From positions 124,001 through 188,000 of the forward strand of contig RHPI01003169.1 of assembly GCA_009103225.1 (NCBI GenBank): a stretch of DNA of 64,000 nt, read 5' to 3'. Positions 594 through 52,012 of the stretch are shown piece by piece. Within the stretch, counting starts at the first letter, position 1. Each line of letters opens with the position of its first letter. Position numbers and translations under genes: made by a program. The notes under the pieces were generated by a model. The model did not search any database. It worked only from the letters and a program-made list of their open reading frames with translations, and had not been told where the DNA came from. Source of the DNA: Chlorokybus atmophyticus (lineage: Eukaryota; Plantae; Mesostigma and Chlorokybus algae).

Positions 594-595
594 AA

Positions 596-12745: not shown

Positions 12746-13124
<379 letters not shown>

Positions 13125-26400: not shown

Positions 26401-26506
26401 ATACTACATAGCTGTATGCTTGCATTGCCGTGAGTATTGTATTATGTACTGTCATGCTAAGGCTCAACTCTTTAAACATTCATAACATTCATAACATTCA
26501 GCAATA

Positions 26507-27105
26507 TGTCATGCCTATTGCCCGCGCATACCAGCCTTCATCGAGCACGCCTACATCGAAACCATCGCCGGCCTACCAGCATACCAGCGCGCGCGCGTCA
26601 TCCACCAGTAGCTAGGTCATGACTTCGAAGTAGCTCACGACCATAGCCTACATAGGCACCGCGCGTGCCTTTTTAGTTGTGAGTTCAATTATAAGTTGTG
26701 TTCTATATCGAGTGGTGATTGCTGTGGAAATAGCCTCGATATGATCGTTAGCTTATGTTTTGAACAGTCATGATTTGACTTGTATAAGTAGTCACAGTGT
26801 TCACCAGATCAGCTGGTGACACAATGAGTGAGAAAGCTAAGAGCTTATGAAACCACTTGAACTGCGAAAACGTCATCCCGGTTACCAAGAACCCCCTCAC
26901 TGTGTGAGAGCCTGTGCATGCTCGTGTGCATGCTTGTCATTGCTATGAGCTTGGTGTGCCTGGTTGCAGTGTGTTTGTTGGCATCAGTTAGGGCATAGTA
27001 TCCATGTGTTGCTTGCTCATTCACTTCACTTAACAGTATAATACATTTTCCGCTGATGCAAAGAACTGTGTAAACAGCACTACCTATAGTAGTGGCTTGT
27101 TAACT
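26507..27105 (+). repeat. Element A terminal repeat B1
   Basis: Aligns with 35367-35953; TATAAG 26783-26788. Confidence 0.92.
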
Positions 27106-27117
27106 CACAGTGTCACC
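27103..27117 (+). promoter_or_regulatory. Putative self-priming PBS of element A
   Basis: ACTCACAGTGTCACC is the exact reverse complement of GGTGACACTGTGAGT in B2 (35658-35672); no TGG tRNA-type PBS present. Confidence 0.7.
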
Positions 27118-27524
27118 CTCTTTGCTCAAGTGAGTGCGTTGCATTCCGCATCGGATATTGCAGTCTGTATCTAGGGACACATCCATGTGCATTCGTTATC
27201 ACTGTCATTACATAGTGCACACACAAGTACTAGTGTGGTGAGTGGTAGCGGCATCGAGACAGGCAGTAGAGCACAAACACTGTACCCTGCATACACTTTC
27301 ACCTGTGGACTAGCTGTATGAGCAGGCCCACCGGGTTCTCTCCAATAGACGTGGGTGACCTCAGTAGCTGAAGCCCAACCTCCAATCTCACCTATGAGCG
27401 GACCAGCGACGGGAGCAACGATCATAGCAGCAGAGGCTCGCGTTCTGTCTCCGACTTCACTCTGTTCCTGTCCACTCCTCCGCATCGAGCTTCCCCACTC
27501 TCGTCCGACAGTGACAACTACGAA

Positions 27525-29100
27525 ATGGAGTCTTCCAGCTCAACCACGTCCATACGCTTCTCCGGACGTGCTGGCACTACCTCGCGGGACGAATTCATTA
27601 TCAAGTTTTACTCCAAGATGCGACAGCAGGCTCTGAAGAATAAAGATTGGTCAGATGAGATTTCTTTTCACATTGCTGCTCAGTATCTGGACCATGAAGC
27701 ACATGATGACTGGAAGTCTGTTGCTGAATTGCATCGAGTTGATGGCTATGGCGAGCTTGCCAGTACCATAGCATCCGCGTCACTGCACAGCCCAGCAACC
27801 GTCTTTGCACCTGCCACTCCCGCTGCAGTCATCGCGCTGTCCATAGCGGCAGCCACTGACAGAGCAGAGGAGGAGGAACCTGAGTTGATGATCGTCAACC
27901 TGACCCCTGCAGAGATTGAAATAAAGACGGCCGCGCGACAGGCCCGGATCTTGGACCGCTCTGCTGCCATCCTTGAAGAACAGCGAACTGCAGCTGTTGA
28001 GGTGGGCACACCTCTACCTTTGGCAACACCTGGCTCTCGTGCGGGAGGCAGTGCTTTCACCCTCGGGTCAGTCGCACTGTGCGCACCAGCCATCATTGTA
28101 GGTGCCGTCATCTCTAACTCTCCCCTCAAGGATCAATACGCTGCACTTCGTCGCATCTTCCCACCGCAGACCACTAGTAAAGTGGAGGAGTTGAGGCGGT
28201 TCCGACGCAAGCCCAATGAGGACCCCCTACGCCTGTACTCCAGACTGGAAGGGCTGTTGAAGGACACTGACTATAAGATCGTCAGTGACGAGGCTGCTGC
28301 AATGGTATATGTCAATGAGTTGGATGCCACCTTGAGCGAGTCGACGCGCCTGACCCTGAACTACAGCAGGCCCCTTGGCTACACGCTCAAGGAAGCTTTC
28401 AAGACTGCACAAGCCATCCATAAGCGCTTGGTGTATGACAAGGCAGTGCTAGATACCAACCGCAGCGCCTCACGGCTTGTAGCCAGCACAACCGGCGAGC
28501 CTCCTCGCCGCGAATGTGGCCGGGACGCTCCACCAGCACGCGACAAAGGGAAACGGTCAGCGCATACTGCTTTGCCTGCCCCTGTGCTGGGGCGCTTGCC
28601 GCACTGCGCTCAACACCACCAGAGGAGACTGCAGCAGCAGTTACCCCACACACACGCTACCGACGATGTAAGCGGCTGCGCATCCACGCCAACGCAGCCA
28701 TGATCGCCAAACAAGGCAAGCATGTCACTATCAATGGACGAGCACCCAAGCGTTTGATGCTGGACTCTGAAGCCCAGCCTGTCATCATCGGACTTTACCT
28801 CGCACGCGACCTTGGCGTCACCAGCGCTGAGCTGATGACGTGCCCATACGTGCTCGACACAGCAACCGGCAGCCGTGACAAGGTGATTCATCGCCATCGC
28901 ATCGCCAAGCAAGCCCTCTGCATTCGCTTGATAGGGGTAAACTTTTCCCACAGCACCGAGGTCATATAGAAGTGTGTGGTCACCGACGCAGGATCCTTCG
29001 ACCTGTGCTGTGCTGGGACAGGACTTCAACTTCCCTGATGGCATGGGGCTAGATTGCTGGACAGAGAAGGCATGGTTTCGTCCCCTTTGGGATGAGGAGG
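27525..29100 (+). pseudogene. Element A gag (N-terminal part) fused by a ~3 kb deletion to the protease region
   Basis: ORF 27525-28703 is near identical to gag of C1 and B; junction GTGCTG|GGGCGC at about 28589 skips the region present in B (42848-45826); protease-like LMLDSEAQPVII near 28755. Confidence 0.8.
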
Positions 29101-29499
29101 ATGGAGAGGTTCAAGGATATCTGCCTCTCGAGCTGGTGGCTCGCACTCGCTCTCACCAAAGGTCAGTTGCAATAGCCACCTACAGGTCAATGTCGATGAC
29201 CACTGACGGGTCAACTGCAGCAGCCACCCATAGGTTGGTTTCGACAACCACTGACAGATCAGCTGCGGTGGTCACCCACAACTCTGACCAAGACTCTCCT
29301 ATCCCATATGACAAATCTCAGGAAGACGCCACTGAGGAAGTGGCCCACCAGAAATCAATGGATCGCCACTGGCGCGCACAGGTGGTCGCACTTCTACTAC
29401 TGACCAGACCACGGCTTACTTCACGGTTCCCTCTCTACAAGGACCAATTTGGTCCTTGTAGAGAGGGTCCAGGAACAACACCAGGTGGCCATTGGAATA

Positions 29500-30480
29500 G
29501 TGGAGTTTTACGTATTTCGTCGACAACAAAGCATCACCGTGTTGGAACTATTTAGAGGTATAGGTAGTGGCCTCGCCGCTGTCCTCAACACCGGTGCGAC
29601 GCTCACGAAGTATTTCTTTTGTGACCCTGATCCACACGCACAGCTTGCCCTGAGCCACCACCTGCGCCACTTACACAAATGCTACCCGCAGCAACTGCCG
29701 CTATCGGCACTGCAAGGCAGTTTAAAGGCACTGCCACAGGACATCCGTTTAATCACTGCAGATCGCCTCCTGGCGGTGGGCAACATTGACCTGCTGATAG
29801 CGCGATGGGAGTGTCAAGGACACTCCAGAGCAGGCAAAGGTCAGGGACTCGCTGATCCTCGCTCGTGACTGTTCTGGGAAGTGATGTGTATCATCAATTC
29901 TGCAGAGCAACCAGCTGTCCATGCCTTCAAAATGCATCATTGCAAATGTGCACTCCGAGGACGATAAACGCCATCACGTGTTCAACAGCTTTCAACAGAT
30001 GTGTTCTTTACTAGGACACCCTTTTAAAAGCAATGCAGCGCGTTATGGCTCCCGTGCCATCGCCTCCGCGCCAAGTGGACAAACCTGGCTGCCGTCGAGG
30101 ATCTCTTTGCTGCTAAATATCTGCACAGCAGTCGTCCACGCGATCTCACCGTTGATGCTATCCTAGACCCTGGGCGCACAGCACAACCAGTCACACGACA
30201 CAATCACCAAAACGTTTACCAGTGCAACCAGCCTTGTCGACCACGTCGTGCGCTCCCCACTCTGGTGTGTTACCCAGGATCATACGCCTACCGCAACCAA
30301 GGCGAAGGCATGGTGTTGGATTCCAACACAGGCCAACCGGAAGAACCCAACGCACGTGAGCGCGAACGCGCCATGGGCTTCTCTCCAGGCAGTATCACAG
30401 GTTCCACGCTGACCGACAATTAGCAATGTGAGTCGTTGGGGCGCGCCATGGACCAGAACAGCATGGTGTGGTTATCGAAA
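29500..30480 (+). pseudogene. C5 cytosine DNA methyltransferase domain of element A (frameshifted)
   Basis: Motif I LELFRGIG (29542-29565), IV WECQGHSRAG (Cys codon 29812-29814), VI ANV (ENV in B and C2), VIII GSRAHRLRAKWTN, IX-X EPNARERERAMGF...LGRAMDQNSM. Confidence 0.88.
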
Positions 30481-30538
30481 ATATGCTTTGCTCTCCAGGA
30501 CCGCCATGTGGCTGTCCAAGAGCTCGAACACCTTTGTG

Positions 30539-30569
<31 letters not shown>

Positions 30570-31047
30570 CGATCGCGTGCGAGAGACGAAAGCCACACAC
30601 ACCGCCTTTGAAATCGCCAATATGGAGGAGCATTCAGCAGTCACTGTGGAGGACATCCCAATAGTTGCCAATGCTACCTCTTGGTCCCATGCTTTTGGAC
30701 CACTGGTTATTGGCCAGACGCGAGAACAACTTGAGGCTCTCATCAACAAGTGGAGGAGTCGGTTCAGCTTGAGCGTGAAGGAACTGGGCGTTTGCTCAAG
30801 TTATCAGATGAACACCGAACCGGTGTTTCAACGACGGTACCGACTCTCCAAGTTGGAAAAAGACTTGGTGGAGCAGAGGTGCAAGGCTCTGCTAGATGCA
30901 GGCCTGATTGAGGAGTCCACATCGGACTTTGCGGCCGCGACCGTCATGCCCCTGAAAAAGGATTCAGCAGGCAAGTGGACAGGCCGGCGTATGTGCGGCG
31001 ATTATCGCCCCCTCAACAACAAAACTAAACAAGACAGGTATAAAATC

Positions 31048-31518
31048 TGTTGAAGATATTCTACATCCAGGCGGACGGTTAGCTTGCACTTCAAATAGAA
31101 TGGCCGCGAGAAGGCTCTAGGCGAGGACTCAAGTCGAAAGTTCCAGGCGCGTGAAGGTTCCAGGCGCGGACTCGAGTTCGGAGTCTGGCGACTTCCAGGC
31201 CTGCACGAGAATCGTCATAACTCGGTGGTTACTACCCCGATTTGGGCGTTCTAGAGCTCAAAAATTAGCCCTTGAAGGTAGCTACAAGATGTTTTTTAGC
31301 TGCATTTTTAGCTGAATTTTTTTTTTCAGAACGCAGCATTTAAATAGGTGTAGCAAACGTGGTGGCTTCTGAAGTAGACAGGTGTACTCCTGGCGGGTAC
31401 GAAACCCGCGTACATCGTGGCAATAGATGGTCTTAGTCTTGTTGTTGCAGCCTCTTGGCGTTGATGTTGAGTGGCGTGCACACATGTGCATGTGTAGGTT
31501 TGTCAAAGCATCTCAATA
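31048..31518. mobile_element. Solo LTR inserted in element A RT
   Basis: TGTTGAAG...CTCAATA; RT resumes across it (RY-x-MPIA); flanks AAATC/TAATG (degenerate TSD). Confidence 0.8.
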
Positions 31519-32181
31519 TAATGCCTATTGCAGAGGGTATCTTTGATGATGTAGGAGACTGTACCGTCGTTAGCATCCCGGACATGCGACAAGGGTACAA
31601 CCGGATCGCCATCAAGGAGGAGGACAAGCACAGGACCTCTTTCTGGGGCAATCGGCAGCTGTACTAGTGGAAGGTCATGCCCTTCGGACTGAAGAATGCT
31701 CCTGCCAAGTTCCAGCGCGTCATGGACAAAGCCTTGCAGAGGCTGGACTTCCCGCGATGCTACATTAATGACATTCTCGTCTTCAGCCGCAGCAACAAAG
31801 AGCACCTACAGCACATCGAGGAGGTGCTGGAGAGACTTAAGGGGGTGGGGATGACGGTGCACCCCGACAAGTGCACCTTCTTCACTCACAAGGTACCCTA
31901 CCTGGGGCACATGATTGTGCCCCACGGTGTGTACGTACAGCAGGCGAAGGTGGAGGCCTTGGAGCAGCTATCCCGGCTCCAATGGACCTACGCGCCTGCG
32001 CACCTTTCTGGGCCTGGCCAACTACTACCGCCGGTTGGTAAAGAACTTCGTAAAGATCGCGCAACCCCTCAACAAGCTCCAAAAAAAGGAATTGGCGTTT
32101 GCGTGGAAGGAGCCACAACAGCAGGCGTTTGACGAGCTAAAGGGCAGGCTCACCACCGCTCCCATTCTGCAACGCCCTGAC

Positions 32182-32525
32182 TGTTGACTAGAGATGCTGC
32201 ATGCAACCATGCACAACAAGCATACACAGCACAGTGGTAAGAGCAGAGCTACGCCGCCAACGAAGTGACCACAGAAGTGAACTAACTCAATAACCCACGG
32301 CCTGTCGGTTCTGGGCCCTTAGTCTGGGTCCTACCAAAGACCAGACCAGACTGTACCAGTCCTAATTGCATGCAGCCTATACATACAACTGCAGTCTATG
32401 AGTAGCTTATCAAGTACAAGTTTAATAAGCTACAACAGGGCTAGCTAAACTGACTGGACAACAGCACATAAGTGTTATATGTTATACATGCAGAGAACAC
32501 TGCATAACATGCTATATTCTCCACA
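32182..32525. mobile_element. Solo LTR inserted at the start of element A RNase H
   Basis: TGTTG...CCACA with perfect 5-bp TSD CTGAC (32177-32181, 32526-32530); removal restores PILQRPDYTKPLILHTDWS. Confidence 0.9.
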
Positions 32526-33171
32526 CTGACTACACCAAGCCCTTAATCCTCCACACCGACTGGAGCAAGCTTGGGATGGGGGCTGTGCTGGTGCAGCATG
32601 ATGAGAACAAGAAGGAGCGGGTGGTGTCGTACGCCAGCCGAAGCAACAACAGCGCTGAGGCCAACTACAGCAGCTACGAGGGGGAGTGCCTCGCTGCAGT
32701 GTGGGCCATCTCCTGCTTCAGACCTTTCCTCTTTAATCGGCAATTTCAGCTGCTCACCGATCATCTGCCACTCAAGTGGTTGATGACCAACCAACATCTG
32801 ACAGGGAAACTTGCTCGCTGGGCCCTGTTGTTGCAGGAGTATGACTTAGAAATCGACCACCGCGCCGGCCTCACCAACCAAGACGCCGATGGCCTCAATC
32901 GCAACCCTCACCTCAGTACCAACGATGCAATCGGAGCTCGTCACGAGCTCGGCCCTGCAGCAGCAGCTCCCACCGTAGCGGCCATGTTTGCTGTTGCCGC
33001 GTTACGTTCAGGGCATCAGATCAACACCACCGCCACCTCAACGGCAGAGGAGGTTCATGCCCTTGAGCCTACCGGCCCCACAGTGACCACACCCCGAGGG
33101 AACGTCCACGCGGTCGACATTGAAGTCGACGACACCGAGCTGGCACCCACCGACACCAGGCAGGACATATG

Positions 33172-33628
33172 TGTTGAAGGTATTACATGGGTGATGCTTG
33201 TATCCGGTCAGCTTGCCCTTCATACAGGAGTCGAGGGTCGAAGGTACCATGAAGAAGCGCGTGGGCTCCAGACTTAGCAAGACGGTCGAGTCATGACGGA
33301 CTCCGGACCAGGCTGCTTGGTAGAGCCTTGGGAGAAATCGCGTAGCTTCGTGGATACGTAAGCTTAGCAAGCGTGGCTTGGCTTGTTGAAAAGCTCTGAT
33401 TGTGAGATAGACAGGGTAGCTTACAGAACAGCAATCGGCTGAGTATAGTGCACGTGGTGCTTGCCAATGTAGACGTGTGTAGAGACTGGCAGGGTATAAA
33501 GCCCAGACTTGTTGCAATGAAGAAGATAGGTCACGATGTAGCATGTGTGCGGATGCTATGGCGGCAGTAGCAGTCATGCTCTTGTGTTGATGTTGTTGGC
33601 GTGTCACTTGCACGTGTGTATGTCAACA
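33172..33628 (+). mobile_element. Solo LTR inserted in the element A RNase H-integrase linker
   Basis: TGTTGA...TCAACA with perfect 5-bp TSD ATATG (33167-33171, 33629-33633); removal restores QDIWLDKP. Confidence 0.92.
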
Positions 33629-34920
33629 ATATGGCTGGACAAGCCATCACTCTCCTTCCTTCAAAGTGGCCAGCTTCCCTCCAACATGAGTGCACAAGAG
33701 AAAGATCGTGTCCGTCAACGTACCCGCCACCATCGGTGGGCGAATGACAAGCTTGGTCGCCGCGTCCATGACAAAAACAAGGAGGTGCCGGCGCCAGCCA
33801 CCCGCAACGGTATTATCGCTGCCCTCCACACTGAGCTTGAGCACTTCGGTGTGAAGCGTACAGCCTGATAAGGGCGCAATAGTGGTGGTATGGGCTGTCC
33901 AAACAGGTGCTGAGGTCCGTCAGTTGCTGCCAACAGTGTGACATGGTACGCGCCAGCCTCAACACACGCAGCGCCACCTTGCACCCTCTCCCCATCTCCG
34001 TTCTTTTCTATCGCTGGGGACTCGACATCTTGGGAGACTTCGCACCCTCGGCACGTGGCAACCGTAACATCCCAGTGATGATCGAGCACTTCTCCAAATG
34101 GGTGGAGCTGGTGCTATTACCCGACAAGAGCAGCAGGGGGGTGTCTCAAGCCTTCCTCTTCCATGCCCTTAGCCGGTTCGGCAGCTGCGCTGAGGTCATC
34201 ACCGACCAAGGCACTGAGTTTAGAGGGGAGTTCGACACCCTGTTGGACAAAAGCTACATCGATCATCGCCGCACTTCGCGTGACCACCCTCAAGCCGACG
34301 GTCTCGCTGAGCGGACAGTACAGACCATCAAGAAGGCACTCCGCAAGTACGTGCTGAAATATAAGAAGAACACCTGGGACGACCACCTTCCGTGGGTGGC
34401 CCTTGGATACCGATTGTCAAAGCAGGCGGCCCCTGCGCGAGTACAGCCCATACTACCTGCTGTTCGGGCGTCCGCCATTGCTTCCTTTCGTGCACAGCAG
34501 GCAGTAGATCGTGTGGTGAACAACCTCGACAATCCCGACTGGATGCACCACGACATTACCACACGCGCCGCGCTGTTCAAGCACACCGTCCCGGTGGCCT
34601 TCAACAACCTACGCATCGCAAAGCACCGCGACACCCTGCGCTACGAGCGCGTGCGGAGCGGCTTCTACAAGGAGCGCCAACGACGGTTTTAAGCAGGGGA
34701 CTTTGCCTACCGCATGGCAGCTACCAAGGACACGCTCGACACCTTCACGGGCCGCACCGTCTACAAGGTACTTAAGGTGTACCCCACAGGAGTGCTGGAC
34801 CTCCTCGGTAAAAACGGCGAGAGGTTGAAAGACAACATGGTGAACTGCGCGCCATGTCATCTTCCGTGCATAGCTGGCTTTGCGCGCATCCAGCACCTTC
34901 GCCCCGCCCGCAGCACACGA

Positions 34921-35052
34921 TGTGAACGCTGCGGCAGCGCCGGCGACGCACTTATGATGCACTGCTATGGCTGTAACAAGGGCCTGCATTGCTACTGTAT
35001 GGAGCCCTCGTTAGACGCAATACCCATGGAGGAGTACTGGTGCAACGATTGC
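34921..35052 (+). CDS. PHD finger (C4HC3) at the integrase C-terminus of element A
   Basis: CERC...CYGC...HCYC...WCNDC; frame stops at 35080-35082. Confidence 0.9.
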
Positions 35053-35119
35053 CGCACCAACGACCCTCCTCACCTGCTTTAGCAACTGAGCTCTGGAGCT
35101 GGAACCTCCCCAGAAACTC

Positions 35120-36179
35120 AGGGGGGGTGGCTTGTTAATTGTGTGTCCTACAGCACAGCATGTACACTAAGAAGGACACCGCCTCCACATGTCCGTGTGA
35201 TTCAGCGATAGCGGAGCAGCTCCACCAAGCACTACGCGCCATACGAGCTGGGATCTTTTACTTTTGCTACATGTCACAACATGTTGCAGCAATAGGGCTA
35301 GCAAGCATGTCTTTCCCTGCAGCAACCCGAGACAGTGTGACCCTCAACGCTCCTCGACCCAACAGCTGTCATACTTATTGCCTGCGCATACTAGCCTTCG
35401 TCGAGTACGCCTACATCGAAACCATCGCCTGGCCTACCAGCATACCAACGCGCGCTCGTCACTGACAGCTAGGTCATGACTCCGGAGTAGCTCACAACCA
35501 TAGCCTACATAGGCACCGCGCGTAGCTGTTCAGTTGTGAGTTGTGTTTTATTGAGTGGTGATTAATGTGGAAATAGCCTCGATATGACCGTTAGCTTATG
35601 CTCTGAACTGTCATGATTTGACTTGTATAAGTACTCACAGTGTTCGCCGGATCAGCTGGTGACACTGTGAGTGAGAAAGCTAAGAGCTTGTGAAACAATT
35701 TGAACCGCGAACACGCCATCCCAGTTACTCAGAACCCCCTCACTATGTGAGAGCCTGTGCATGCTCGTGTGCATTGTGCTTGTCATTGCTGTGAGCTTGG
35801 TGTGCCTGGTTGCAATGTGTTTGTTGGCATCAATCATGGCATAATATCCACGTGTTGTTTGCTAATTCACCTCACTTAATAGTATAACACATTTTCCGCT
35901 CATGCAAAGAACTGTGTGTAAACAGCACTACCTAGAGTAGTGGCTTGTTAACTGTGTGTCCTATAGCACAGCATGTACACTAAGAAGGACACCGCCTCCA
36001 CATGTCCGTGTGATTCAGCGACAGCGGAGCAGCTCCACCAAGCACTCCGCGCCATACGAGCTGGGTTATCTTTTACTTTTGCTACATGTTACAACGTGTT
36101 GCAGCATCAGGGCTAGCAAGCATGTCTTTCCCTACAGCGACCCCAGACAGTGTGACCCTCAATGCTCCTCAACCCGACA
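35120..36179 (+). repeat. Element A 3' region: PPT, A1, gc, B2, A2
   Basis: PPT AGGGGGGG 35120-35127; A1 35141-35364 aligns with A2 35954-36179; junction CCAACA-GC-TGTCAT at 35359-35372. Confidence 0.92.
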
Positions 36180-37476
36180 AATGCCGATGTACCTATGTGC
36201 AAGCTGCTTGTTCAAAAGGCAACCCGGAGGCGTGGAGAACGGCATGCATGATACCGTTACATTGACACGTAGACACGACACAAGATTTCAAATGGAGGGG
36301 GGGGCGGAGGGACAAAACACATTAACATGTCACGTTGCAAGTTTATCACAAGTGTCAATTTGTCATTAGTCCACCCACCCATCGACCCACCCACCCACCC
36401 ACTCAGCCCCTCTCTCGCACTTGCGGCAATGCACTACATCTACTTTATAACGTTAATAAACATACACTTCAGACTATTTTCACAAGTTAATAAGCATGCG
36501 CTGCACATCAGGTTTGTTCGGTACGCACTTGTAGTATACGCTGATAACATACCGGCACAAAGACATGCGTAACTTTCGTGAGAGAAAAGGGGGGGGGGGG
36601 GGGGGGGGGGGGGGCNAATTGTGAATAATAAACACATGTTGCAAAGCATGTGCATATGCTTTGTCAAGGAAGCTCACCTTACACGTTATCAATGTGTACG
36701 TAATGTGCCGTGTTCCTCCTGGTGGCATACATAACTTTTGCGATGTCCGGCATGCCATCACGGCAATACTAGATAGGGTTGACCCTTAAGTACAACCTCC
36801 TAGCGGTATATAGGTAGAAGCATTGTACTGCTTTGGAGAACCTGTGAACATGCACTTGGGAAACACGTCATCACCTCGCTTTACTGTCGTTGCCGCTAAT
36901 AGCCCATTTAAGGGCTCGGGATGTTGAGCCGTCCCGTTAAGATTGCCTATACCATACTACATTTCAACGCGTTCATCGCATGGGGATGTACTCCGACAGC
37001 CGTAATGCGTTTCCTTCATGTGCAAACACCAATTCTACAATTGGGTTGTCTTCCCCCAATTGGCGATGGTCTGCTAAGTCGTCGATAACCTTTAACGCAA
37101 AAGAGCACAACTCCTGCACCCTGGGGGGTTGTCTACGTGGACAACTTTTGGGAGGAGGTACCTCTTTACCTTTATCGGCAACGACCACGGCGGCCATCTC
37201 CGCCCCTCCCTGCAATAACTTGTCCGCCGCCCCCCCCTCTCTACCACCACCCCGCCGCCGCCCTAGCCTATGGCACAAGCGCGGCAAGGATTCTGCTGCG
37301 AGGGCCTTAACACATAAGGCCTTAACACCTAAACGCTCCGTGATTCAGTGGCTTAATCCCAGGTTTGTGGGCAGGTTGTTGGAGGTGTTGGCAGCGGCAG
37401 CGGCAGCGGCGGGGGCGGGGGCGGCGTTGTTTACTACAGGGCTGCTAGCCTACTATAGGAGAGTTGAGCTACTTCC

Positions 37477-39941: not shown

Positions 39942-40435
39942 NNNNNNNNNNNNNNNNNNNNNNNNNNNNNNNNNNNNNNNNNNNNNNNNNNNNNNNNNNN
40001 NNNNNNNNNNNNNNNNNNNNNNNNNNNNNNNNNNNNNNNNNNNNNNNNNNNNNNNNNNNNNNNNNNNNNNNNNNNNNNNNNNNNNNNNNNNNNNNNNNNN
40101 NNNNNNNNNNNNNNNNNNNNNNNNNNNNNNNNNNNNNNNNNNNNNNNNNNNNNNNNNNNNNNNNNNNNNNNNNNNNNNNNNNNNNNNNNNNNNNNNNNNN
40201 NNNNNNNNNNNNNNNNNNNNNNNNNNNNNNNNNNNNNNNNNNNNNNNNNNNNNNNNNNNNNNNNNNNNNNNNNNNNNNNNNNNNNNNNNNNNNNNNNNNN
40301 NNNNNNNNNNNNNNNNNNNNNNNNNNNNNNNNNNNNNNNNNNNNNNNNNNNNNNNNNNNNNNNNNNNNNNNNNNNNNNNNNNNNNNNNNNNNNNNNNNNN
40401 NNNNNNNNNNNNNNNNNNNNNNNNNNNNNNNNNNN
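39942..40435. other. Assembly gap (other gaps 19003-19173, 50809-50878)
   Basis: Runs of n, each bordered by (GA)n or poly-G/C. Confidence 0.99.
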
Positions 40436-43400
40436 CCCCCCCCCCCCCCCCCCCCCCCCAACACACACAAGTGCAGTCGCCCACCAACGGCACACACACC
40501 CCACAAGGGATGAGGGGAGAGCCCCTTCAACAGCTACAACCAGCTGCAGGCACCCCACACACAAGTGGCCTTTGAGTGGTGAACACACTCTCATCCCTAC
40601 TTAAGGTTGTTACTGAGCATATATACCAGTTGCCGCTCTCCCGACCTGGCACAGAGGATTCCAAGGCCCAAGGCCTTGTCACTGTGGGCTGGCCTATCAG
40701 CACATGCTGACTGCCAGTGTGTCAAACATAGGATGTCATGCCGAATACCCTCGCATGCCAGTCCTCCTCGAGCATGCCTACATCCAGCCCCAAGCCCGGG
40801 CTACCAGCATAAAGAACGCGCGCGCCCCAGTCTACTGTTAGCTACTTCGTACTCCATGTAGCATGTAGCTAGGGCTACTCTATATGCCTCTCCGTAGGAA
40901 CCGCGCGTAGCTGATCAGGAATCTATTATCAGCTCATGTGCTACATTGAGTCTTAGGACATTTCCGTAGTAGCGTACGGTTTCGATGTGACCGTTGGCCT
41001 AGTGCCCACGTGGCACAGTCATGATTTGACATGTGTAAGTAGGAAGTCATGTCACTAGATCCGCTGAGGACACTGCGAGCGAGTACTAAGAGTAGAGACT
41101 CTGATTTTGAGAGCTTGTGAAGCGACTTGAACTAGAAGCACACCATCTTGGTTGCGAAAGACTGCCTTACCACATGAGCCACAATGTATGCTCTTGTGCG
41201 CTGTGCCTGTCATTGCTGTGAGCTTGGCGCTGGTGTGTTTCCTGCATCAGTCAGGACATAGCATCTCTGAGTTGCTTGTTCATTTACCTTACTTAACAGT
41301 GTAATACATCATCCACTCATGCAAAGAACTGTATATATAGCACTACCTATCGTAGTGGCTTGTTTACTCACAGTGTCAACCTCGTTGTTGAAGTGAGTGC
41401 ATCGCATTCTGCATTAAGTAGTGCAGTTTGTAGCGGGGGATACATCCTTGTGCATTCTTTATGACTATCATCACATAGTGCGCACACAAGCACTAGTGTG
41501 GTGAGTGGTAGCAGCATCAAGACAGACGGTAGAGCACAAACACTCTACCCTGCATACACTTTCACCAGTGGACTAGCTGCATGAGTAGGACCACCCCGTT
41601 CTTTCCAATAGACGAGGGTGACCTGAACAGCTGAAGCTCAACCTCCAACCTTACCGACGAGCGAACCAGCAACGGGAGCAGCGATCGCAGCAGCAGAGGC
41701 TCGCGTTCTGTCTCTGGCTTCACTCAATTCCGGTCTACTCCTCGCCATCAAGCTTCCCCACTATCGTCCAACAGCAACAACTATGAGATGGAGCCTTCCA
41801 GCTCAACCACATCCCTGCGCTTCTCCGGACATGCTGGCACCACCTCGCTGGACGAATTCATCATCATATTTCAGTCAGTCCCAAGATGCGATTGCAAGCT
41901 CCGAAGCACAAAGACTGATTAGATGAGAATTCTTTCCACATCGCTGCTCAGTATCTGGGCCATAAAGCACACGATGTCTAGAAATCTGTTGTTGAATTGC
42001 ATCGAGTTGATGGATATGGCGAGCTCGCCAGCACCATAGCATACTGCGTCACTGCACAGCAGCCATCGCTCCACCTGCCACTCCAGCTGCAGTCACCGGC
42101 TTGTCCATAGCTGCAGCCATTGAGAGGGCAGAGGAGGAGAAGCATAAGTTGGTTATCGTCAACTTGACCCCTGCAAAGATTGAGATTAAGACGGTCGTAC
42201 GATGGGCCCGGATCTTGGACCGTTCTAATGCTATCCTTGAAAGACAACGAGCTGCAGCTGTTGAGGTGGGCACACCTCTACCTCTGGCAACATCTGGCTC
42301 TCGTGCGGGAGGCAGTGCTTTCACCCTCGGGTCAGTTGCACTGCGCGCACCAGCAATTTTTGTAGGTGCTGCCATCTCTGACTCTCCACTCAAGGAAATA
42401 TACGCTGCATTTCGTTGCACCTTCCCACCTCAGACCACCAACAAAGTGGAGGAGCTCAGATGGTTTCGACGCAAGCCCAACGAGGACCCTCTACGCCTGT
42501 ACTCTAGACTGGAAGGGCTGTTGAAAGACACTGACTACAAGATCGTCAATGACGCGGCTGCTGCAGTGGTTTATGTCAATGAATTGGATGCCACCCTCAG
42601 CGAGTCGACGCGGCTAACCCTGAACTACAGCAAGCCCCTTAGCTACATGCTCAAAAAAGCTTACGAGACTGCACAAGCCATCCACAAGCGCTTGATGTAT
42701 GAGAAGGCAGTTCTGGACACCAACCGCAATGCCTCATGGCCTGTAGCTAGCACAACTACTGAGCCTCCTTGCTGCAAGCGTGGTCGGGACGCTCCGGACG
42801 CGACAAAGGGAAACGATCACCTCATACTGCTTTGCCTGCCCCTGTGCTGTGTCATTGCTGTGGACGGCATGGGCACTACCAAAAGGAGTGCACCGAAGAG
42901 TACTCAACCCTAATCCGCGACCACTGTCACCAGACGGGTCACTTGGAGTCAGTCTGCTGGCTCAAGTTCCCTAAGTTGAGACCTGCCAACAGCTACAGCA
43001 ACAACACTAGAGGCCACAACGGCAACAGCTCTGGTGGCTACAATAGCAACCACCCTAAAAAGTATAACAACAACGACAACTACGCTAACGCTCGCAAGGA
43101 AGAGCAAGGCTACAGGGGGAAGAATCGTCCTCCTCAGCGCAAGGGACTAGAAGGACGTCCGCACACTGCTGCTGTTGCTGCTAAGGCTTCAGCCAACCCG
43201 CCAGCTGATGACCATGATGCTGCCCTCATGGCGCGTATGGCGCGCTTGGAGGAAGTCAAAGAGCAGGACCACCGCGACTGCTACTTTGCCCAATGAGCAC
43301 TGATGGCTCCGAAGCGCACGAGAGACATGTGCACTCCGTCATGCGTTGAACCATCCCAATGAGCACGAGGGGAAGTCGCAACATCGTCAGCAACTACCCT

Positions 43401-43935
43401 TTCTGAAGCCACCGGTGGTGCTGCATCAGCAGCAACAACCACACCGGCTGCGACGTCAACTCCATCAACGTCAGCATCAACTATTCCAGCTGCAGCAGAA
43501 GTTGGTGCATTAGTGGGCACCGTGACGCCAACACTGGTGAGCACGATGGCGACTATTACTGCTACCACGGACCCTGCAGCAGTAGATCGCACCGATCCCG
43601 CTCCAGCTGCAAGACCACCTGTGTCAGCAAGCGTTGAGACCACCCTCGTGCCACTGACCGGCACTGTCGCAGCCACTGCCAGTACCATCGCCCAGCCCGC
43701 TGCCACCGCAGCGACGCTCGCGGCTACATTGCCCGTCCTCAACGTCACTCAGGCTGTCCCGCGACATCAGCAAGCTGAGCGCGCATGGGAGACCATCATG
43801 CGTGGAGCAGATCCCACTACCATTGTTTTTGGCGAGGAGGAGTGCACCACGCGCGTTGTACGCAGTGATTGTGTTTTCCCACTGCCTGAGTATCACACCC
43901 TGCCGGAGCAGACCCGGCGGCGATTGGAGGATAAA

Positions 43936-44387
<452 letters not shown>

Positions 44388-46799
44388 TCCTCGTCGGCAC
44401 GGCGCCTCCCATGTGAAAGCACATCTTTGTGGTTAGAACACCTGTTGTGCTGGAGTTGGCCCTGCATTTTTTCTGGACTCTGCATAACAACATGCAAACC
44501 GCACCACGCCAGCCCGTACACGTCCGTCACAAGCCTTTCGAGCCAAGTCCGCTGGACACGTATCGATACTGGCAACTCAACGTGCAGCGGCACTTAGGTG
44601 ATGCAGCCGTCATGTCTTTAGGTAACGACAAAGCACTGAGACCCCTTTGTACTGTTCTGCTTCACTAGCGCTGCACCGCTTTGGAACAAGCGTTCAATTG
44701 GTGGCAGGACTTAACTGCAGCCATCAACGCAAGAGCGCAAGCCCTTGCTGCTGCTTGCGCTTCCATTCCTCAATCAACAATCGCGGGCCCATTATCCAGC
44801 ACGACACCTCTCGCCGTTGCGCCCGACATTGATCAGGCGAGGGCGCTGGCCCAACAAACCATGGGGTGATCGCCTCGCTGGTACCCGCCTTAGTGGAAGA
44901 CTTGCCTGACGATCAACGAGATTTAGGGAGAGGCTACCTTTCACCACAAGGGTGTACACAACGGGATGGAGCAGGCTCAATTGGAGAACAGCAAATTCGC
45001 ACTGCCCTATTGCGCCAAGCAACTATGCTACATCGACAAGAAGGAATCGGCCTGAGACAGATGATGGCGATGCGAGAAGGTGGCAATGCAGCGCGAGCGA
45101 GTCTAGTGACTTTGCTAATCATCAATCACCCTGCAATCCCTCTGTTCGCATTCGGCACCGGATTATACTGATTGGACGCCTTCTTTCGCTCACTACGGCA
45201 AGCCTATGACGAGGTTGCCTAGGCAACCTCTGACATCTTGAGAGGAGCTAAAGGAGGCCATACTAAAATTGCCAAAAGTGGAAGCAGCGCGACAACGTAA
45301 ACGCATCGCAGCTGCTTATCAGCTGCACGTCCATCAGCCAGAGATTTACCTCACGGTTCGTGCACGAGCAACAACGGTGCTAGAAGTGGGGGTGGTCAAT
45401 GGCAGATGGGCTGCAGGGACCCTAAGGGTTCCCACCATTACCCACAACATAAAAGTGCGGCTCCTGCGCGCAGTGTATCTTCAGCCCATGCCTCAGAACC
45501 ATCGCTGGTGTGACGTGACCAACAACACGATAGCCACATGGGAAGGTACACTGGTCAGGGAGGCGGCTCATGCTGTACGCTGAACTTATGGAGAAAGTAG
45601 GTTACACGGGAGGCGGGTCCACAAACACCCGGTCTTTTAGGGTTCCCCCCACAGCCACTGGCTACGCCGCCAGGTATAACCCTGGCCACATAGAGGCGCA
45701 AATCCCTGCGCCACAACCAGGCAGCACCGCCAGCACCCAGACCGCAGCGGGTATACCAACAGCCAAGACAAGGACGGTTCGAGCCAGGCCGCGGACGAGG
45801 AGGTTCTCAAGACCCAGCCGGTCGAGGGGCGCTTGCCGCACTGCGCTTGACACCACCGGAGGAGACTGCAGCAGCAGTCACCCCACGTACACGCTACCAA
45901 CGTTTCATTTAAGCGTGTGCGCATCAACGCCAATGCAGCCATGATCGCCAACAAAGGCAAGCATGTCACCATTAACGGTCGAGCACCCAAGCGCGTGATG
46001 CTGGACTCTAGAGCCCAGCCTGTCATCATCACACGTTACCTCGCACGCAACTTCAGCATCACCAGTGCTAAGCTAATGCCCTGCCCATACGTGTTCGACA
46101 CAACACCCGGCAGCCAGTGAAGGTGATTGGCATCACCGAGCAGGCCTTTAGCATTCGCTTGATAGGGTTGGACCCTTCCCACATTGGAGGTCATACAGAA
46201 GTGTGTGGTCACCGATGCGGGATCCTTCAACCTGCTGCTGGGACAAGACTTCAACTTTCCTGTTGGCATGGGGCTGGACTGCTGAACAGAGAAGGCATGG
46301 TTTCGTCCCCATTGAGACGAGGAGGATTGAGAGGTTGAAGGATACCTGCCTCTCGAGCTGGTGACTCGCACTCGCTCTCACCAAAGGTCCGTTGCAACAG
46401 CCACCTACAAGTCGGTTTCGACAACCATTGACAAGTCAGCAGCAGCAGTCACCCACAACCCTGACCTGGACTCTCCTATCCCATACGATGAGTCATAGGA
46501 GGATGCCAAAGAAGTGGCCCAACAGAAACCATCTGAACGCCGTTGGCGCACAAGTGGTTGCACATATACTACTGACCAAATCACGGCTCATTGCACGAAT
46601 CCCTCTCTACAAGGACTAAGCTGCAGTCCACGAGCAATAGCAGGTGGCCACTGGAGTAGTGGAGTTCCACATGTTTCGCCGACAACAAGGCATCACCGTA
46701 TTGGAACTGTTTGGAGGTAGTGGCCTTGCCGCTGTCCTCAACACCGACGTGCCGGTCACCAAGTACCTCTACTGTGACCTTAATCCACACGGATTGATT

Positions 46800-47706
46800 T
46801 GTCGGGCCTGGCAGAGTTGTGTGCCCCTCCAGGTCGCTCCCAACCGCATTGCCATGATGGGGAATGAGGCCAGCCTTGTGGACTGTTGGTTGTGTAGCTG
46901 CACAGTACGGAGTGCAAAGAATACCCCCCTGTCTATACTTGTGGGGGAAACACATGTGAGGCTAATGGCATGTGGTACGATGTGGTGCTGTGCGCTCTGA
47001 GTGATGAAAGTGCGTGGCTTACAATGCTAACAGGAGCAAGTCAACAAGCCATTACTAGAGGTAGTGCTACTTATACAGTTTCTTGAATGAGGTCAAGATA
47101 ATTCCACTGTTAAGTGAGGTGTATGAATGCGGCAACTCGTGGATACCACACTCTGATGCGGACCACACAACGTGCACCCACACAACCACAATCACATCAA
47201 GTGACAAGCAATGCACGTGTGCATACACAGCATTCTCTCACGTGTAGATGTGTTTTGGCCGGAATGATGATGTGATGCAGTCACATCAAGTCACAACCTT
47301 CAGAGAGCAAGTCCCAAGCACTCCAAAAGATCAACACCCGTACTTCTTGGTTCCGGTCTTTCAGTTCTCACTTACAGTGTCATCAACGTATAGAGATTAA
47401 ATCCTAAGCTCTTATAGCCAAGTGACATCTATCCAATTCTAAGATGATGGCTAGTTTACGAAATGACCTAGATCAAGCCTAAGTCACAACTCGCAACGGA
47501 CCAGCTAGTATGGCTTAAACTAAGTTCCTACGAAGACTGACTGATAATTGCTTCATGTCGCGTGGGACTCATGCCGGTAGCCGGGGTGAGTGTCTGGCTG
47601 TAGGCATGACCGATCAAAAGGGTTGTCGATGCTGGTAGCACGGTAACGATGCCTGGCTGTAGGCATCAATGAGGAAGTTGGCCCCTCTTGGACCGCTGGC
47701 ATGACA
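46800..47706 (-). mobile_element. Solo B-A repeat unit of a third subfamily inserted in the element B DNMT domain
   Basis: Minus strand starts TGTCATGCC, ends GGCCCGACA; contains hairpin plus ATGGCTTGTTGACT junction (47039-47052) and GATGACACTGTAAGTGAG; flanks GATT/AATC give 4 extra nt relative to element A. Confidence 0.85.
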
Positions 47707-50700
47707 AATCGCCTTGAGCCACCACTTGCGCCACCTACCCAAATGCTACCCGCAGCTGCCACTATCAGCCTTGCAAGATAGCCTAAAGGCACTTCCACAG
47801 AACATCCGTTTAATCACTGCGGATCACCTCCTGGCGGTGGGCAACGTCGACCTGCTGATAGCGAGGATGGGAGTGTCAAGAACACTTCAGGGCAGGCAGA
47901 GGCCAAGGACTCTCTGATCCTCGCTCGCAACTGTTTTGGAAGCTGATGCGCGTTATCAAAGGCCTCTGGGGTACATCATCGAGAACGTGCAGTCCGAGGA
48001 CGATAAGCGTCACGTGGCCAACGGCTCTCGACAGGTGTGTTCCTTATTGGGGCATCTGCTCTCTCAAAATGAACGCAGCGCGTCATGGATCCCGTGCTCA
48101 TCGCGTCCGCGCCAAGTGGACCAACCTGGCTATAGTTGAGGAATTTTTTGCTGCTGAATATCTGCATAGCAGTCGTCCACGCGATCTTATTGTCGACGCT
48201 AATCTGAACCCTGGGTGCACAGCACAACCGGTCACGCGACACAATCACCAGCACTTCTACCAGTGCAACCAGCCTAATCAACCGCGCCGTGCGCTCCCCA
48301 CTCGGGTGTCTTAGCCACCAATATACGCCTTCCGCAACAAAGGTGAAGGCATGGTGTTGGTTTCCAACACAAGCCGGCTGGAGGAACCCAACGCTCGCGA
48401 GCGCGAACGCGCCATGAGATTCTTTCCAGGCAGTATGACAGGTTCCATGCTGACCCGCAGCAGTGTTAGTTGTTGGGACGAGCGATGGACTATAATATCA
48501 CGGTGTGGTTGTGAAAGATGTGCTTTGCTCTCCAGGACCGCCATGTGTTCTTTGAGGAGCTTTAACACATGGCGGGGGGGTGGGCTGATCGCATTCAAGA
48601 GACTAAAGCAGCACACACCGCCCTCGAAATTGCCCACATGGAGGAGCAAGCAGCAGTCACTGTGGAGGACATTCCAATGGTCGCCAACGCTACCTCCTGG
48701 TCCCATGCCATTGGGCCACTGGCTACAGGCCAGATACGAGAACAACTCAAAGCTCTCCTCAACAAGGGGAGGAGCCAGTTCAGCATCAGCGTGAAGGAGC
48801 TGGGCATCTGCTCAGTTTACCATATGGACATCGAGTTGGTGGTCACCGAACCGGTGTTCCAACGACAGTACAGACTCTCCAAGTTGGAAGAAGACTTGGT
48901 GGAGCAGAGGTGCAAGGCGCTTTTAGTGCAGGCCTCATTAAGGAGTCCACATCGGACTTTGCGGCCGCGACCGTCATGCCCCTATAGAAGGATTCAGCAG
49001 GCAACTGGACAGACCGGCGCATGTGCGGTGATTATCGCCCGCTCAACAACAAGACCAAGCAAGACAGGTAATCAATGCCTATTGCAAAAGGTATCTTTGA
49101 TGATGTAGAAGACTATACGGTCTTCAGTATCCTGGACATGCGCCAAGGGTACAACCAAAATGCCATCAAGGAGGAGGACAAGCACAAGACCTCGATCAAG
49201 GGCAACCGGCAGCTGTACTGGTAGAAGGTCATGCCCTTCGGACTGAAGAATGCTCTTGCCAAGTTCTAGCACGTCATGGACAAAGCCCTCGAGAGATTGA
49301 ACTTCGCACGCTGCTACATCGACGACATCCTCATCTTCAACTTTCAGTAGGCAGCGCGCGCAAAGAGCATCGCGTCAGTCAACGCACTCAGCACTATCCC
49401 TTGGCCGACAACAAGCTGTATCGATGGATGTAGCATGAGGACAAGGAGGTCCCAGCACCAGCTGCGTGACAAGGCATTATTGCTGCCCTCCACACCGAGC
49501 TCGGACATTTCGGTGTTAGCCGCACGGCCGGTTTGGTCATGACTTAGTACTAGTGGTATGCTGTGCACTAACAGGTGCACAAGTCCATCAGCGACTGCCA
49601 GCTTTGTGACATGGTCCGCGCGAGCCTCAACACGCGCTACGCCACTTTGCATACCCTCCCTATCTCGGGACCGTTCTACCGCTGGGGACTGAACATCCTC
49701 GTGGACTTATCGCCCTCAGCACGAGGCAACCGCTACATCCTCGTTATGATCGAGCACTTCTCCAAGTGGGTGGAGCTGGTGGCCCTTCTCGACAATAGTA
49801 GCGAGGGAGTAGCCCAGGCTTTCCTCTCCCATTCTCAGACGCTTCGGCAGCTGTGCCGAAGTCGTTACCGAGCAGTGTACGGAGTTTAGAGGAGCCTTTT
49901 AAAAGCTCATAGACAAATGCTTCATCGACCATCGCCGCACTTCACGCGACCATCCACAAGCCGATGGTCTCGCTGAGCGTACCGTGTAGACCATTAAGAA
50001 GGCTTTGCACAAGTACGTCCTCGACTACGAGAAGAACATATGGGTTGACCACCACCCATGGGTAGCACTGGGGCACCGGCTGTTCAAGCAGGCAGCACTG
50101 CGGGAGTACAGCCCGTACTATTTGGTGTTCAAAGGCAGCCATTGCTCCCCTTTTCGCGCACAGCAGGAGGTCGACAGAGTGGTGGACAATTTTGACAACC
50201 CCGACAAGATGTTGTATGATGTGAAAGTGCGCAGCGTATTGTTTGAGCACACTGTCCCCATGGCCTTCAACAACCTGCGCGTTGCTCAGCACCGCGACAC
50301 GCTTTGCTACGAGCGTGTGCGCAGCGGTTTCCACAGGGAGCGAGAATGCCGCTTCCAACTAGGAGACTTCGTGTACCGCATGGCGGCCACACATGACACC
50401 CTCGACACCTCCGTCGGGCGCGCTGTCTATAATGTATTGAAGGTGTATCCCACAGGGGTACGGGACCTTCTGGGACAACAAGGCGAACGCACGAAGGACA
50501 ACATGGTGAACTGCGCGCTCTATCATCTTCCCCACGTTGCTGGCTGCGGCAAGATCCAGCACGCGCGACCGCTGCGAAGCACCCGCTGCGAGAAATGCGG
50601 CAGTGCCAACAACGATCCGACGATGCTGTTTTGCAAAGGCTGCAACCAAGATATGCACTGTTACTGCCTTGACCCTCCATTGGACAAGGTGCTGTGAGAA

Positions 50701-50878
50701 TATTAATGCAGTGACTGCCGCATCAGCGATCCCCCACACAGTCGGTAAAAGCTGAGTCCTGGAGCAGGAGGCTACCCCAGAACTTTGGGGGGGGGGGGGG
50801 GGGGGGGGNNNNNNNNNNNNNNNNNNNNNNNNNNNNNNNNNNNNNNNNNNNNNNNNNNNNNNNNNNNNNNNNNNNNNN

Positions 50879-52012
50879 GGGGGGGGGGGGGGGGGGGGGG
50901 GGGGGGGCTTGTTGACTGTGTGTCCTGCAGCACAGTAAGTACAGTAAGGAGGAGAGCGTCACGAGCTCCACTACTGACCGATCCTCATATGGGTTCATCC
51001 CTGAGCGTATGCCTATGTCTGGGGGGTTGTCTTTGTTTGTGTTGCTCTAATGCTGCGCGCAGCACCAGCATGCCCACGGCATGAGTGCTCGTCTGTAGCA
51101 TCCCTGAGACAGCGTGACCCTCGACCATGGCAGGCACGACAGCTGTCATGCCATATACCCTCGCATGCCAGTCCTCCTTGAGCATGCCTACATCCAGCCC
51201 CAAGCCCGGGCTACCAGCATGAAGACCGCGCGCGCCCCAGTCTACTGCTAGCTACTTCGTACTCCATGTAGCATGTAGCTAGGGCTACTCTATATGCCTC
51301 TTTGTAGGAACCGCGCATAGCTGATCAGTTAGGAATCTATTATCAGCTCATGTGCTACATTGAGTCTTATGACATTTCCGTGGTAGCATACGGTCTCGAT
51401 ATGACCGTTGACCTAGTGCCCACGTGAAACTGCACAGTCATAATTTGACATGTACAAGCAGGATGTCATGTCACTAGACTCGGTGGTGACACTGTGAGTG
51501 AGTACTTATAGTAGAGACTCAGACTTTGAGAGCTTGTGAAGCGACTTGAACTAGAAGCACACCATCCTGATTGCCAAGAACTGCCTTACCACGTGAGACA
51601 CAATGTATGCTCTTGTGCGCTGTGCCTGTTATTGCTGTGAGCTTGGCGGTGGTGTGTTTGCTGCATCAGTTAGGACATAGCATCTCTGAGTTGCTTGTTC
51701 ATTCACCTCACTTATCAATGCAATACATCATCCACTTACGCAAAGAACTGTGTATACAGCACTACCTGTCGTAGTGGCTTGTTGACCGTGTGTACTACAG
51801 CACAGTAAGTACATTAAGGAGGAGAGCGTCACCAGCTTTACTACTGACCGATCCTCACATAGGTTCATCCCCGAGCCTATGCCTGTGTTTGGGGGGGGTG
51901 TTTTTGTTTGTGTTGCTTTAATGCTGCGCGCAGCACTCGCATGCCCACGGCATGAGCGCTCGTCTCTGGTATGCTCGAGACGGCGTGACCCTCGACCATA
52001 GCAGGCACGAAA
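50879..52012 (+). repeat. Element B 3' region: poly-G PPT, A1, gc, B2, A2
   Basis: Junction CGACA-GC-TGTCAT at 51137-51149; A1 aligns with A2; B2 aligns with 40734-41368. Confidence 0.92.

Follow-up and report, generated by a model that had tools for sequence, protein, structure and literature searches.

How does a retrotransposon that encodes a DDE integrase come to carry the repeat order of a tyrosine-recombinase element? The question is raised by E1 (26507-36179) and E2 (40734-52012), two Ty3/gypsy-type elements in a 64,000-nucleotide stretch of the genome of the alga Chlorokybus atmophyticus (assembly GCA_009103225.1, contig RHPI01003169.1, positions 124,001 to 188,000 of the forward strand), here called the window. 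Textbooks link split repeats to tyrosine recombinases and paired long terminal repeats (LTRs) to DDE integrases, and the clade to which E1 and E2 belong breaks this link. The split layout is a property of a whole green-lineage Ty3/gypsy clade, not of E1 and E2 alone. We suggest, with a probability of roughly 0.6, that the integrase acts on an attachment (att) site inside the LTR, in a complementary DNA (cDNA) that carries a U5|U3 junction.

Results

Split repeats in the window

E1 and E2 have in common the order B1, internal region, G-run polypurine tract (PPT), A1, GC, B2, A2. The layout was established by a direct-repeat search, BLAST of the four repeat blocks against the window, pairwise BLAST of E1 and E2, and direct reading. 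The features, in window coordinates, are the following.

26503-26506, + strand: left target-site duplication of E1, AATA (direct reading; three of four positions agree with AATG on the right)
26507-27092 (586 nt), + strand: E1 B1, the left element end, starting TGTCATGCC; 87% identical to B2
27093-27105, + strand: E1 motif r, 13 nt (TGGCTTGTTAACT), after B1 and equal to the first 13 nt of A
27106-35110, + strand: E1 internal region, about 8 kb
35111-35127, + strand: E1 PPT ending in G7, directly 5' of A1 (read directly)
35128-35364, + strand: E1 A1, 237 nt, beginning with r and ending AACA; 94% identical to A2
35365-35366, + strand: E1 spacer GC, the internal att junction (A end, GC, B start)
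35367-35940, + strand: E1 B2 (repeat search and BLAST)
35941-36179, + strand: E1 A2, the right element end, ending CCCGACA
36180-36183, + strand: right target-site duplication of E1, AATG
40730-40733, + strand: left target-site duplication of E2, AGGA
40734-41355, + strand: E2 B1; 90% identical to B2
41356-41368, + strand: E2 motif r, with one mismatch
42849-45826, + strand: E2-specific insert, not present in E1, holding a C run of about 450 nt with one N, where the assembly is unreliable
50809-50878: assembly gap of 70 nt at the E2 PPT/A1 border, with G runs of 22 and 29 nt on its sides
about 50905-51141, + strand: E2 A1, its start blurred by a G run
51142-51143, + strand: E2 spacer GC; the junction GACAGCTGTC is a perfect 10-bp palindrome
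51144-51774, + strand: E2 B2
51775-52012, + strand: E2 A2, its end decayed to CACGAAA
52013-52016, + strand: right target-site duplication of E2, AGGA
46800-47706, - strand: E3, nested in E2; a solo B-r-A unit that belongs to a third, diverged subfamily, with ends TGTCATGCC...CCCGACA

The element ends are TGTC...GACA, the right end of E2 now reading GAAA, and the inner junction is AACA-GC-TGTC in E1 and GACA-GC-TGTC in E2. E1 and E2 are only about 78% alike and therefore represent independent insertions of related subfamilies. A1 and A2 are 94% identical in E1 and 88% in E2; with repeat pairs 87-94% identical and reading frames broken, both elements are old, dead copies. The flanks of E3, GATT and AATC, show no clear target duplication.

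An earlier note, made from the DNA letters alone, had described the split layout of E1 and E2, and the repeat search, BLAST and reading place it at the same coordinates. The TGTC...GACA ends, the AGGA/AGGA and AATA/AATG duplications and the (G/A)ACA-GC-TGTC junction that it listed can all be read directly. Its PPT before A1 corresponds to the G7-ending tract of E1 and to G runs in all lineages, the E2 junction lying in a gap. The repeat sizes need partial correction: about 225 nt for A holds without r (about 237 nt with it), and B measures 574-631 nt, not 590-640 nt.

Motif r occurs seven times in the window, every time at an expected position; one of 100 shuffles also gave seven matches. It starts with TGG, and its reverse complement ends in CCA. 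The copy after B1 is a candidate for the start of the primer-binding site (PBS) or for a short R region. In E1, TGTAA lies 20 nt before the B end (27069-27073), with a matching site near the end of E1 B2; the site has decayed to TGTAT in E2 and E3. In chlorophyte algae, TGTAA serves as the polyadenylation signal. Its use here would place the RNA 3' end at the B/r border and would allow an R region as short as r.

Within one copy, A1 and A2 are usually closer to each other than B1 and B2 are (E1, E2 and the related loci L014, L023, L026 and L075; L numbers denote loci considered below). The identities are 93% for A against 84% for B in L014, and 94% against 87% in E1. Both pairs should be identical at insertion, and the difference between A and B possibly reflects gene conversion between nearby A copies or unequal decay.

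E1 contains no N. In E2 the PPT/A1 junction is unreadable, the gap at 50809-50878 falling exactly there; a single N at 44364 lies within the long C run of the E2-specific insert, and a 494-nt gap (39942-40435) lies 298 nt outside the element. Support for the layout thus comes from E1, from the remaining parts of E2 and from relatives. A chromovirus at the window start provides an internal control: it has ordinary paired LTRs, so the assembly does not generate the split pattern generically.

Relatives with the same layout

Metagenome contigs of the Joint Genome Institute (JGI) were scanned with an integrase alignment, which gave 80 loci with 41-57% integrase identity. Self-BLAST and reading identified the full order B1, internal region, PPT (G6-9), A1, NN, B2, A2 in L014, L018, L023, L026, L028, L051, L059 and L075, and the 3' part, A1-NN-B2-A2, in about 16 additional loci. 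With obvious duplicate loci removed, at least 24 distinct copies were counted, from independent assemblies (metagenome contigs, Haematococcus and Klebsormidium). The clade is thus found in chlorophyte (Haematococcus) as well as streptophyte (Klebsormidium) algae.

In all copies B starts with TGTCATG(C), as it does in the window, A ends in (C)GACA, and the spacer between them is always 2 nt long. The window copies have GC as the spacer, and so do L005, L006, L028, L041 and Klebsormidium. Among old, AT-rich copies the spacer varies: most variants (AC, GT, AT, AA) differ from GC by one or two substitutions, and one copy has TA. The ancestral spacer looks like GC, in which case the ancestral core would have been the perfect palindrome GACAGCTGTC. 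The idea that the spacer is newly made in each cycle was rejected; an ancestral GC that decayed by transitions is preferred, given that the variants are mostly one or two substitutions off.

The same att signature is present in L005, in Haematococcus L006 and L041, and in Klebsormidium L088. A is about 55 nt long in L006 and L041, 113-180 nt elsewhere and 237 nt in the window. The PPT G run stands directly 5' of A1 in all lineages, nearly all related loci having a run of 6-9 nt at this site. Sequence conservation is also seen directly after B1, the TGG start being confined to the window lineage. A role for r as a universal template-switch signal was rejected; the motif is absent from the JGI lineage.

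L005 is a young element with 800-nt LTRs that are 99.9% identical, and its palindrome lies 207 nt into the LTR. The contig runs from LTR through the internal region to LTR and straight into the start of the LTR again, which places an LTR|LTR junction in sequence data. Among the other contigs, Haematococcus L004, L006 and L007 are rearranged (inverted or tandem partial copies), only L006 being informative, and the short contigs L001-L003 hold no LTR information.

Several further observations concern these relatives. In the JGI loci L008-L087 a nearly constant distance of about 426 nt separates the integrase core and the G-run PPT. A of the JGI loci begins ATACATGAGAATTTCATCTCA, with a 5-bp inverted repeat (TGAGA...TCTCA), and A of K. 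nitens likewise begins with ATAC. At 20295/20296 of L006 (Haematococcus lacustris, JASKMD010000003.1) two copies meet head to head in an exact inverted junction at their B ends, and neither has A2; the junction reflects either a real palindromic rearrangement or an artefact of long-read assembly.

Target-site duplications

Fourteen complete copies have both ends visible. Seven of them show a perfect 4-bp duplication (E2 AGGA, L023 ATAA, L026 ATGT, L059 CCAT, L028 AAGG, L057 CACA and L031 GTAT), and three of four bases match in E1, L018, L051 and L077. By our arithmetic, at 1/256 per copy, seven or more perfect duplications among 14 would arise by chance with a probability of about 5e-14. Duplications of five bases gave no fit in the complete copies. 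The earlier note had made its proposal depend on duplications that flank TGTC/GACA in other copies, and these are what the survey found. TG...CA termini with a short target duplication (4-6 bp) are as in Ty3/gypsy elements, and the combination of TG...CA ends with 4-bp duplications marks DDE integration and not tyrosine recombination.

Copy forms

A form with one repeat of each kind is common: about 19 distinct 3' ends read PPT-A|flank. Four such copies with a visible 5' end are plain B-internal-A, two of them with perfect duplications. This is the one-repeat form predicted in the earlier note, and it occurs with 4-bp duplications. The solo B-A form is represented by E3. In the split copies, B after the A-NN junction always continues into A, never into the leader. 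All of the observed forms can be derived from a single isomer by recombination between A1 and A2 or B1 and B2; pairing of ends from different att sites offers an alternative derivation.

Coding capacity and integrase

Pfam was run on stop-to-stop pieces of the elements. The coding features of E1 are as follows.

27372-28700, + strand: gag-like open frame, 443 aa (by position only; no Pfam match)
28439-28966, + strand: aspartic protease remnant (Asp_protease_2, E = 0.002; weak, under the curated cut-off)
29467-30492, + strand: DNMT-like (C5 cytosine methyltransferase-like) domain (DNA_methylase, E = 0.0013; weak)
30682-32181, + strand: reverse transcriptase, with frameshifts and stops (RVT_1, E = 1.5e-21)
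32429-33274, + strand: gypsy-type RNase H (RT_RNaseH, E = 2e-36; homologs found)
33584-34689, + strand: integrase, zinc-binding region and DDE core (rve, Integrase_H2C2)
34693-35079, + strand: C-terminal PHD finger (PHD, E = 5e-6), positioned as in intact relatives

The integrase of E1 keeps D48, D108 and E143 (numbered on the 33883-34689 piece), and the D, D, E catalytic triad is invariant in an alignment of 12 integrases that includes the window copy. Among solved structures the closest to the E1 integrase are the Ty3 Gag-Pol polyprotein (E = 3e-22) and then the integrase of prototype foamy virus (PFV; E = 1e-18). The earlier assignment of the elements to gypsy type with a DDE integrase therefore stands, supported by the matches to rve, RT_RNaseH, RVT_1 and PHD, by the invariant triad and by Ty3 as best solved match. 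A search with the integrase piece returned about 30,000 relatives, the closest about 50% identical; these closest relatives are long polyproteins of the order RT-RH-(DNMT-like)-H2C2-rve-PHD from Haematococcus lacustris and metagenomes. The RNase H piece had no protein match above about 69% identity. The closest protein matches come from Closterium, Haematococcus, Klebsormidium and a liverwort.

In E1 and in intact relatives the Pol order is protease, reverse transcriptase (RT), RNase H, integrase, with a gypsy-type RNase H, as in Ty3/gypsy elements, and the additional DNMT-like and PHD domains leave this order unchanged. The integrase is of the retroviral class, with a zinc-binding domain and a D,D35E core, and according to Pfam the C-terminus carries a PHD finger, not a chromodomain. 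What departs from Ty3/gypsy elements is the repeats: there are no two complete co-linear LTRs, the left end having B only and the right end A-NN-B-A.

The DNMT-like domain of E1 matches the DNMT-bearing segment of the L005, L037 and L087 polyproteins in tblastn (E = 1e-37 to 1e-40). It stands before RT in both window elements and between RNase H and integrase in these intact relatives, a domain shuffle within the clade. The young element L005 has three large open reading frames without a Pfam match: 1957-5781 (1274 aa), 12150-14135 (661 aa) and 14181-14759 (192 aa). Two of the three are located between Pol and the 3' LTR, a place in which the window family leaves no space for genes.

The check for a tyrosine recombinase called for in the earlier note gave no Phage_integrase or other tyrosine recombinase domain on either strand of E1, in E2, or in the polyproteins and accessory open reading frames of intact relatives, although a very divergent one in an unannotated frame is conceivable.

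Other features of the window

G or C homopolymer runs are found at 43937-44387 (427+23-nt C), 30540-30569, 36589-36614, 40436-40459, 50787-50808 and 50879-50907; apart from the first they are 22-30 nt long. Those at 40436-40459, 50787-50808 and 50879-50907 adjoin N gaps, and three more runs lie beside single Ns. They look like sequencing or assembly artefacts that make the adjacent sequence unreliable. A direct repeat pair (12568-12828 and 18740-19000; 261 nt, 99% identical, 6172 nt apart), both copies of which stop right at an N or gap, may be another LTR element or an assembly duplication. A tandem duplication with an 87-nt unit, 98% identical, occupies 15576-15749.

The chromovirus (1-5700) is a separate and apparently intact element, with gag at 637-1533 and a 1177-aa Pol at 1770-5303 that carries an SH3-like domain and a chromodomain. 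Its LTRs (1-300 and 5378-5677) are 98% identical, the 5' LTR being cut by the window edge, and its best protein matches (Closterium, Haematococcus) are only about 47-53% identical.

Discussion

A proposed route of integration

The PPT precedes A and the leader follows B, and reverse transcription must therefore yield an A-GC-B LTR, with termini at the A start and the B end, as the earlier note had reasoned. The integrated ends, the B start and the A end, are instead abutted inside each LTR as ...GACA-GC-TGTC..., and this internal junction looks like the LTR-LTR junction of a conventional element built into the LTR. Given that the integrated ends differ from the termini made by reverse transcription, and that the B end is joined to the A start inside the integrated copies, we infer from the established logic of reverse transcription that the integrating DNA must have had joined termini and must have been opened at an internal att. 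The two events named in the earlier note, a B-end|A-start join and a cut at an internal CA-GC-TG, are thus supported by the anatomy of the copies, which points to a circle or a tandem-LTR molecule as the intermediate.

In the scheme that we favour, the RT-defined cDNA termini (B|A, corresponding to U5|U3) would be joined, giving a two-LTR circle or a tandem-LTR cDNA. The element's own integrase would then open one internal att with staggered cuts after each CA, and the two new 3' ends would be inserted 4 bp apart in the target. Only one isomer exists, and the att used would always be that of the LTR copy adjoining the leader and PBS; a possible, speculative reason is that the leader-adjacent LTR becomes double-stranded first during reverse transcription. 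Both B-internal-A and solo B-A could arise by A1/A2 or B1/B2 recombination, or by the pairing of ends from two att sites. In the window lineage r could guide the precise B|A join, a role that would not be general. There is precedent for the cleavage step: the integrases of PFV (PMC1180852) and human immunodeficiency virus type 1 (HIV-1; PMC1905944, PMC4372172) specifically cut the palindromic LTR-LTR junction of 2-LTR circles, which gives processed ends (PMC1180852, PMC1905944).

Several observations weigh against this reading. The evidence for the intermediate, a circle or tandem-LTR cDNA, comes entirely from integrated copies, and all window copies and most metagenome copies are decayed. Three of the 14 complete copies (L011, L014 and L075) have no convincing duplication. 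The tRNA gene search of the window found none, so r is matched to no tRNA as a PBS would be, and the shared motif is 13 nt long in the window lineage only, L006 having about 8 nt and the JGI loci 0-2 nt. The mirror isomer, B-A-NN-B-internal-A, which the earlier note had predicted, was seen in none of the copies surveyed, whereas the observed isomer is represented by at least 24 distinct ones. If either of two equivalent att sites could be cut freely, both isomers should be equally frequent, and the symmetric-circle version therefore fails; cutting a symmetric two-LTR circle at random does not suffice, and the plain circle model is incomplete. An upstream-tandem-LTR model, based on mis-annealing of the plus-strand strong-stop DNA on r, was also rejected, as it predicts the very isomer that is never seen.

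The single isomer would find an explanation without any free circle. In this alternative the integrase makes a double-strand break at the att of the 5' LTR in the linear cDNA (A-GC-B ... A-GC-B), holds the two new ends in a single complex and inserts both, after which host end joining seals the old termini. The exclusive isomer follows if cutting is confined to the 5' LTR, the first to be completed; the cutting of a palindromic junction by a tetrameric integrase is documented (PMC1905944); and the order that results does not differ. The B|A join is precise, and r overlaps it at both cDNA ends in the window lineage, so that its 13-nt microhomology could help to seal the B end to the A start. 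However, the chromosome would stay broken until repair, and the B|A joins are equally precise in lineages that lack r, which is unusual for end joining. We consider this route unlikely, if worth keeping in view. Much less probable is that the layout is an inherited rearrangement of a conventional element with a true B-A LTR (TG...CA), descended from one odd master copy and involving no special integration chemistry. A B-A unit with TG...CA ends and a 4-bp duplication fits this idea, and B-A exists in solo form as E3, but the PPT precedes A1 and not B2, and the leader follows B1 and not A, so that reverse transcription cannot make a B-A LTR. Moreover, the layout is kept across lineages at 41-57% integrase identity and in chlorophyte and streptophyte hosts.

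A tyrosine recombinase acting in trans, as for non-autonomous TOC1-type elements, would make the DDE integrase irrelevant, and the repeat order is indeed that of the split direct repeats of PAT, Ngaro and DIRS (PMC8969392). We nevertheless regard this as highly improbable: the copies have 4-bp target duplications and TG...CA ends, the D, D, E residues of the integrase are invariant, relatives have long, intact polyproteins, and no tyrosine recombinase domain was found in any frame tested. Next to no weight can be given to an assembly artefact or to chance nesting of a solo LTR beside an element. The window assembly does contain homopolymer-flanked gaps, one of which touches the E2 PPT/A1 border, but E1 is free of gaps, and at least 24 distinct copies, drawn from unrelated assemblies, repeat the order and keep the spacer at 2 nt.

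Integrase action on the internal att of a junction-bearing cDNA thus remains the reading that we prefer. Its wider form we hold only tentatively, at a little under even odds: that in a widespread green-lineage Ty3/gypsy clade an LTR-LTR-type junction is the obligatory substrate, that the DDE integrase opens junction-bearing cDNA at the leader-adjacent att only, and that the resulting permuted 'proviruses' converge on the split repeats of tyrosine-recombinase elements.

Significance

The combination of a conserved internal palindrome, 4-bp duplications and a strictly single isomer makes it testable whether internally abutted ends can be the normal substrate of an integrase, a point still debated for retroviral 2-LTR circles. 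If the proposal is true, the clade would be the first natural system in which integrase cleavage of abutted LTR ends is the main route and not a side reaction, and it would provide a natural model for the debate on PFV and HIV 2-LTR cleavage. There is also a practical consequence, in that annotation tools that expect paired LTRs will mis-call the split-repeat Gypsy clade. As for the copies in the window, they are decayed and bring their host no function.

Comparison with known systems

The earlier note knew of no description of this architecture with a DDE integrase, and in this it was wrong. The legend of Fig. 4c in de Mendoza et al. 2018 (PMC5890265) notes KnitGypsy-Dnmt3 of Klebsormidium nitens, with a DIRS-type repeat structure (A-coding-B-A-B) and Gypsy domains. 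This element resembles those of the window in having a Gypsy Pol with an embedded C5-DNMT or, in the window, DNMT-like domain and a DIRS-like repeat order. The K. nitens locus L088 has a PPT, a 129-nt A and then GACA-GC-TGTCATG, the att signature of the window. It differs in host, nucleotide similarity to the window is only about 65% and is confined to RT, and the DNMT-like domain of the window elements lies before RT, not between RNase H and integrase. The portion of the article that was covered (PMC5890265) gives no termini, target duplications, att palindrome, isomers or mechanism. Full-text literature searches that combined split direct repeats with Gypsy or integrase found no other description. 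The window elements are the same kind of element as KnitGypsy-Dnmt3 in another host, a kind that is known but barely characterised.

Other green-algal elements were compared by description only. Chlamydomonas REM1 and Gypsy-7a_cRei (PMC9940879) are Gypsy elements with a PHD finger in Pol, as in the window, and Gypsy-7a_cRei is drawn with 'LTR subparts' and with unequal left and right LTRs (PMC9940879).

Split direct repeats of the order A1-internal-B1-A2-B2 define PAT-like DIRS and Ngaro elements (PMC8969392). The repeat geometry of these elements and of TOC1 is that of the window, equivalent to a two-LTR unit opened inside one LTR. However, PAT-like DIRS, Ngaro and TOC1 encode a tyrosine recombinase and make no target duplication, whereas the window clade has a DDE integrase, TG...CA ends and 4-bp duplications. 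In bacterial insertion sequences of the IS3 and IS30 types, the circle junction brings two ends together with a few base pairs between them, and a DDE enzyme acts on this junction. These are DNA transposons without reverse transcription, in which the spacer comes from the donor flanks, and we claim no homology between them and the window clade.

A parallel for the cleavage itself is with the retroviruses PFV and HIV-1, in which the 2-LTR junction is cut after CA on each strand of the abutted ends and integration-competent ends are regenerated, as we propose for the window clade. In the latter, the 2-nt spacer would imply the loss of 1 nt per end. In retroviruses, however, the junction exists only in the circle, between LTRs, and the route is accessory or debated, whereas in the window clade the junction is present inside every LTR.

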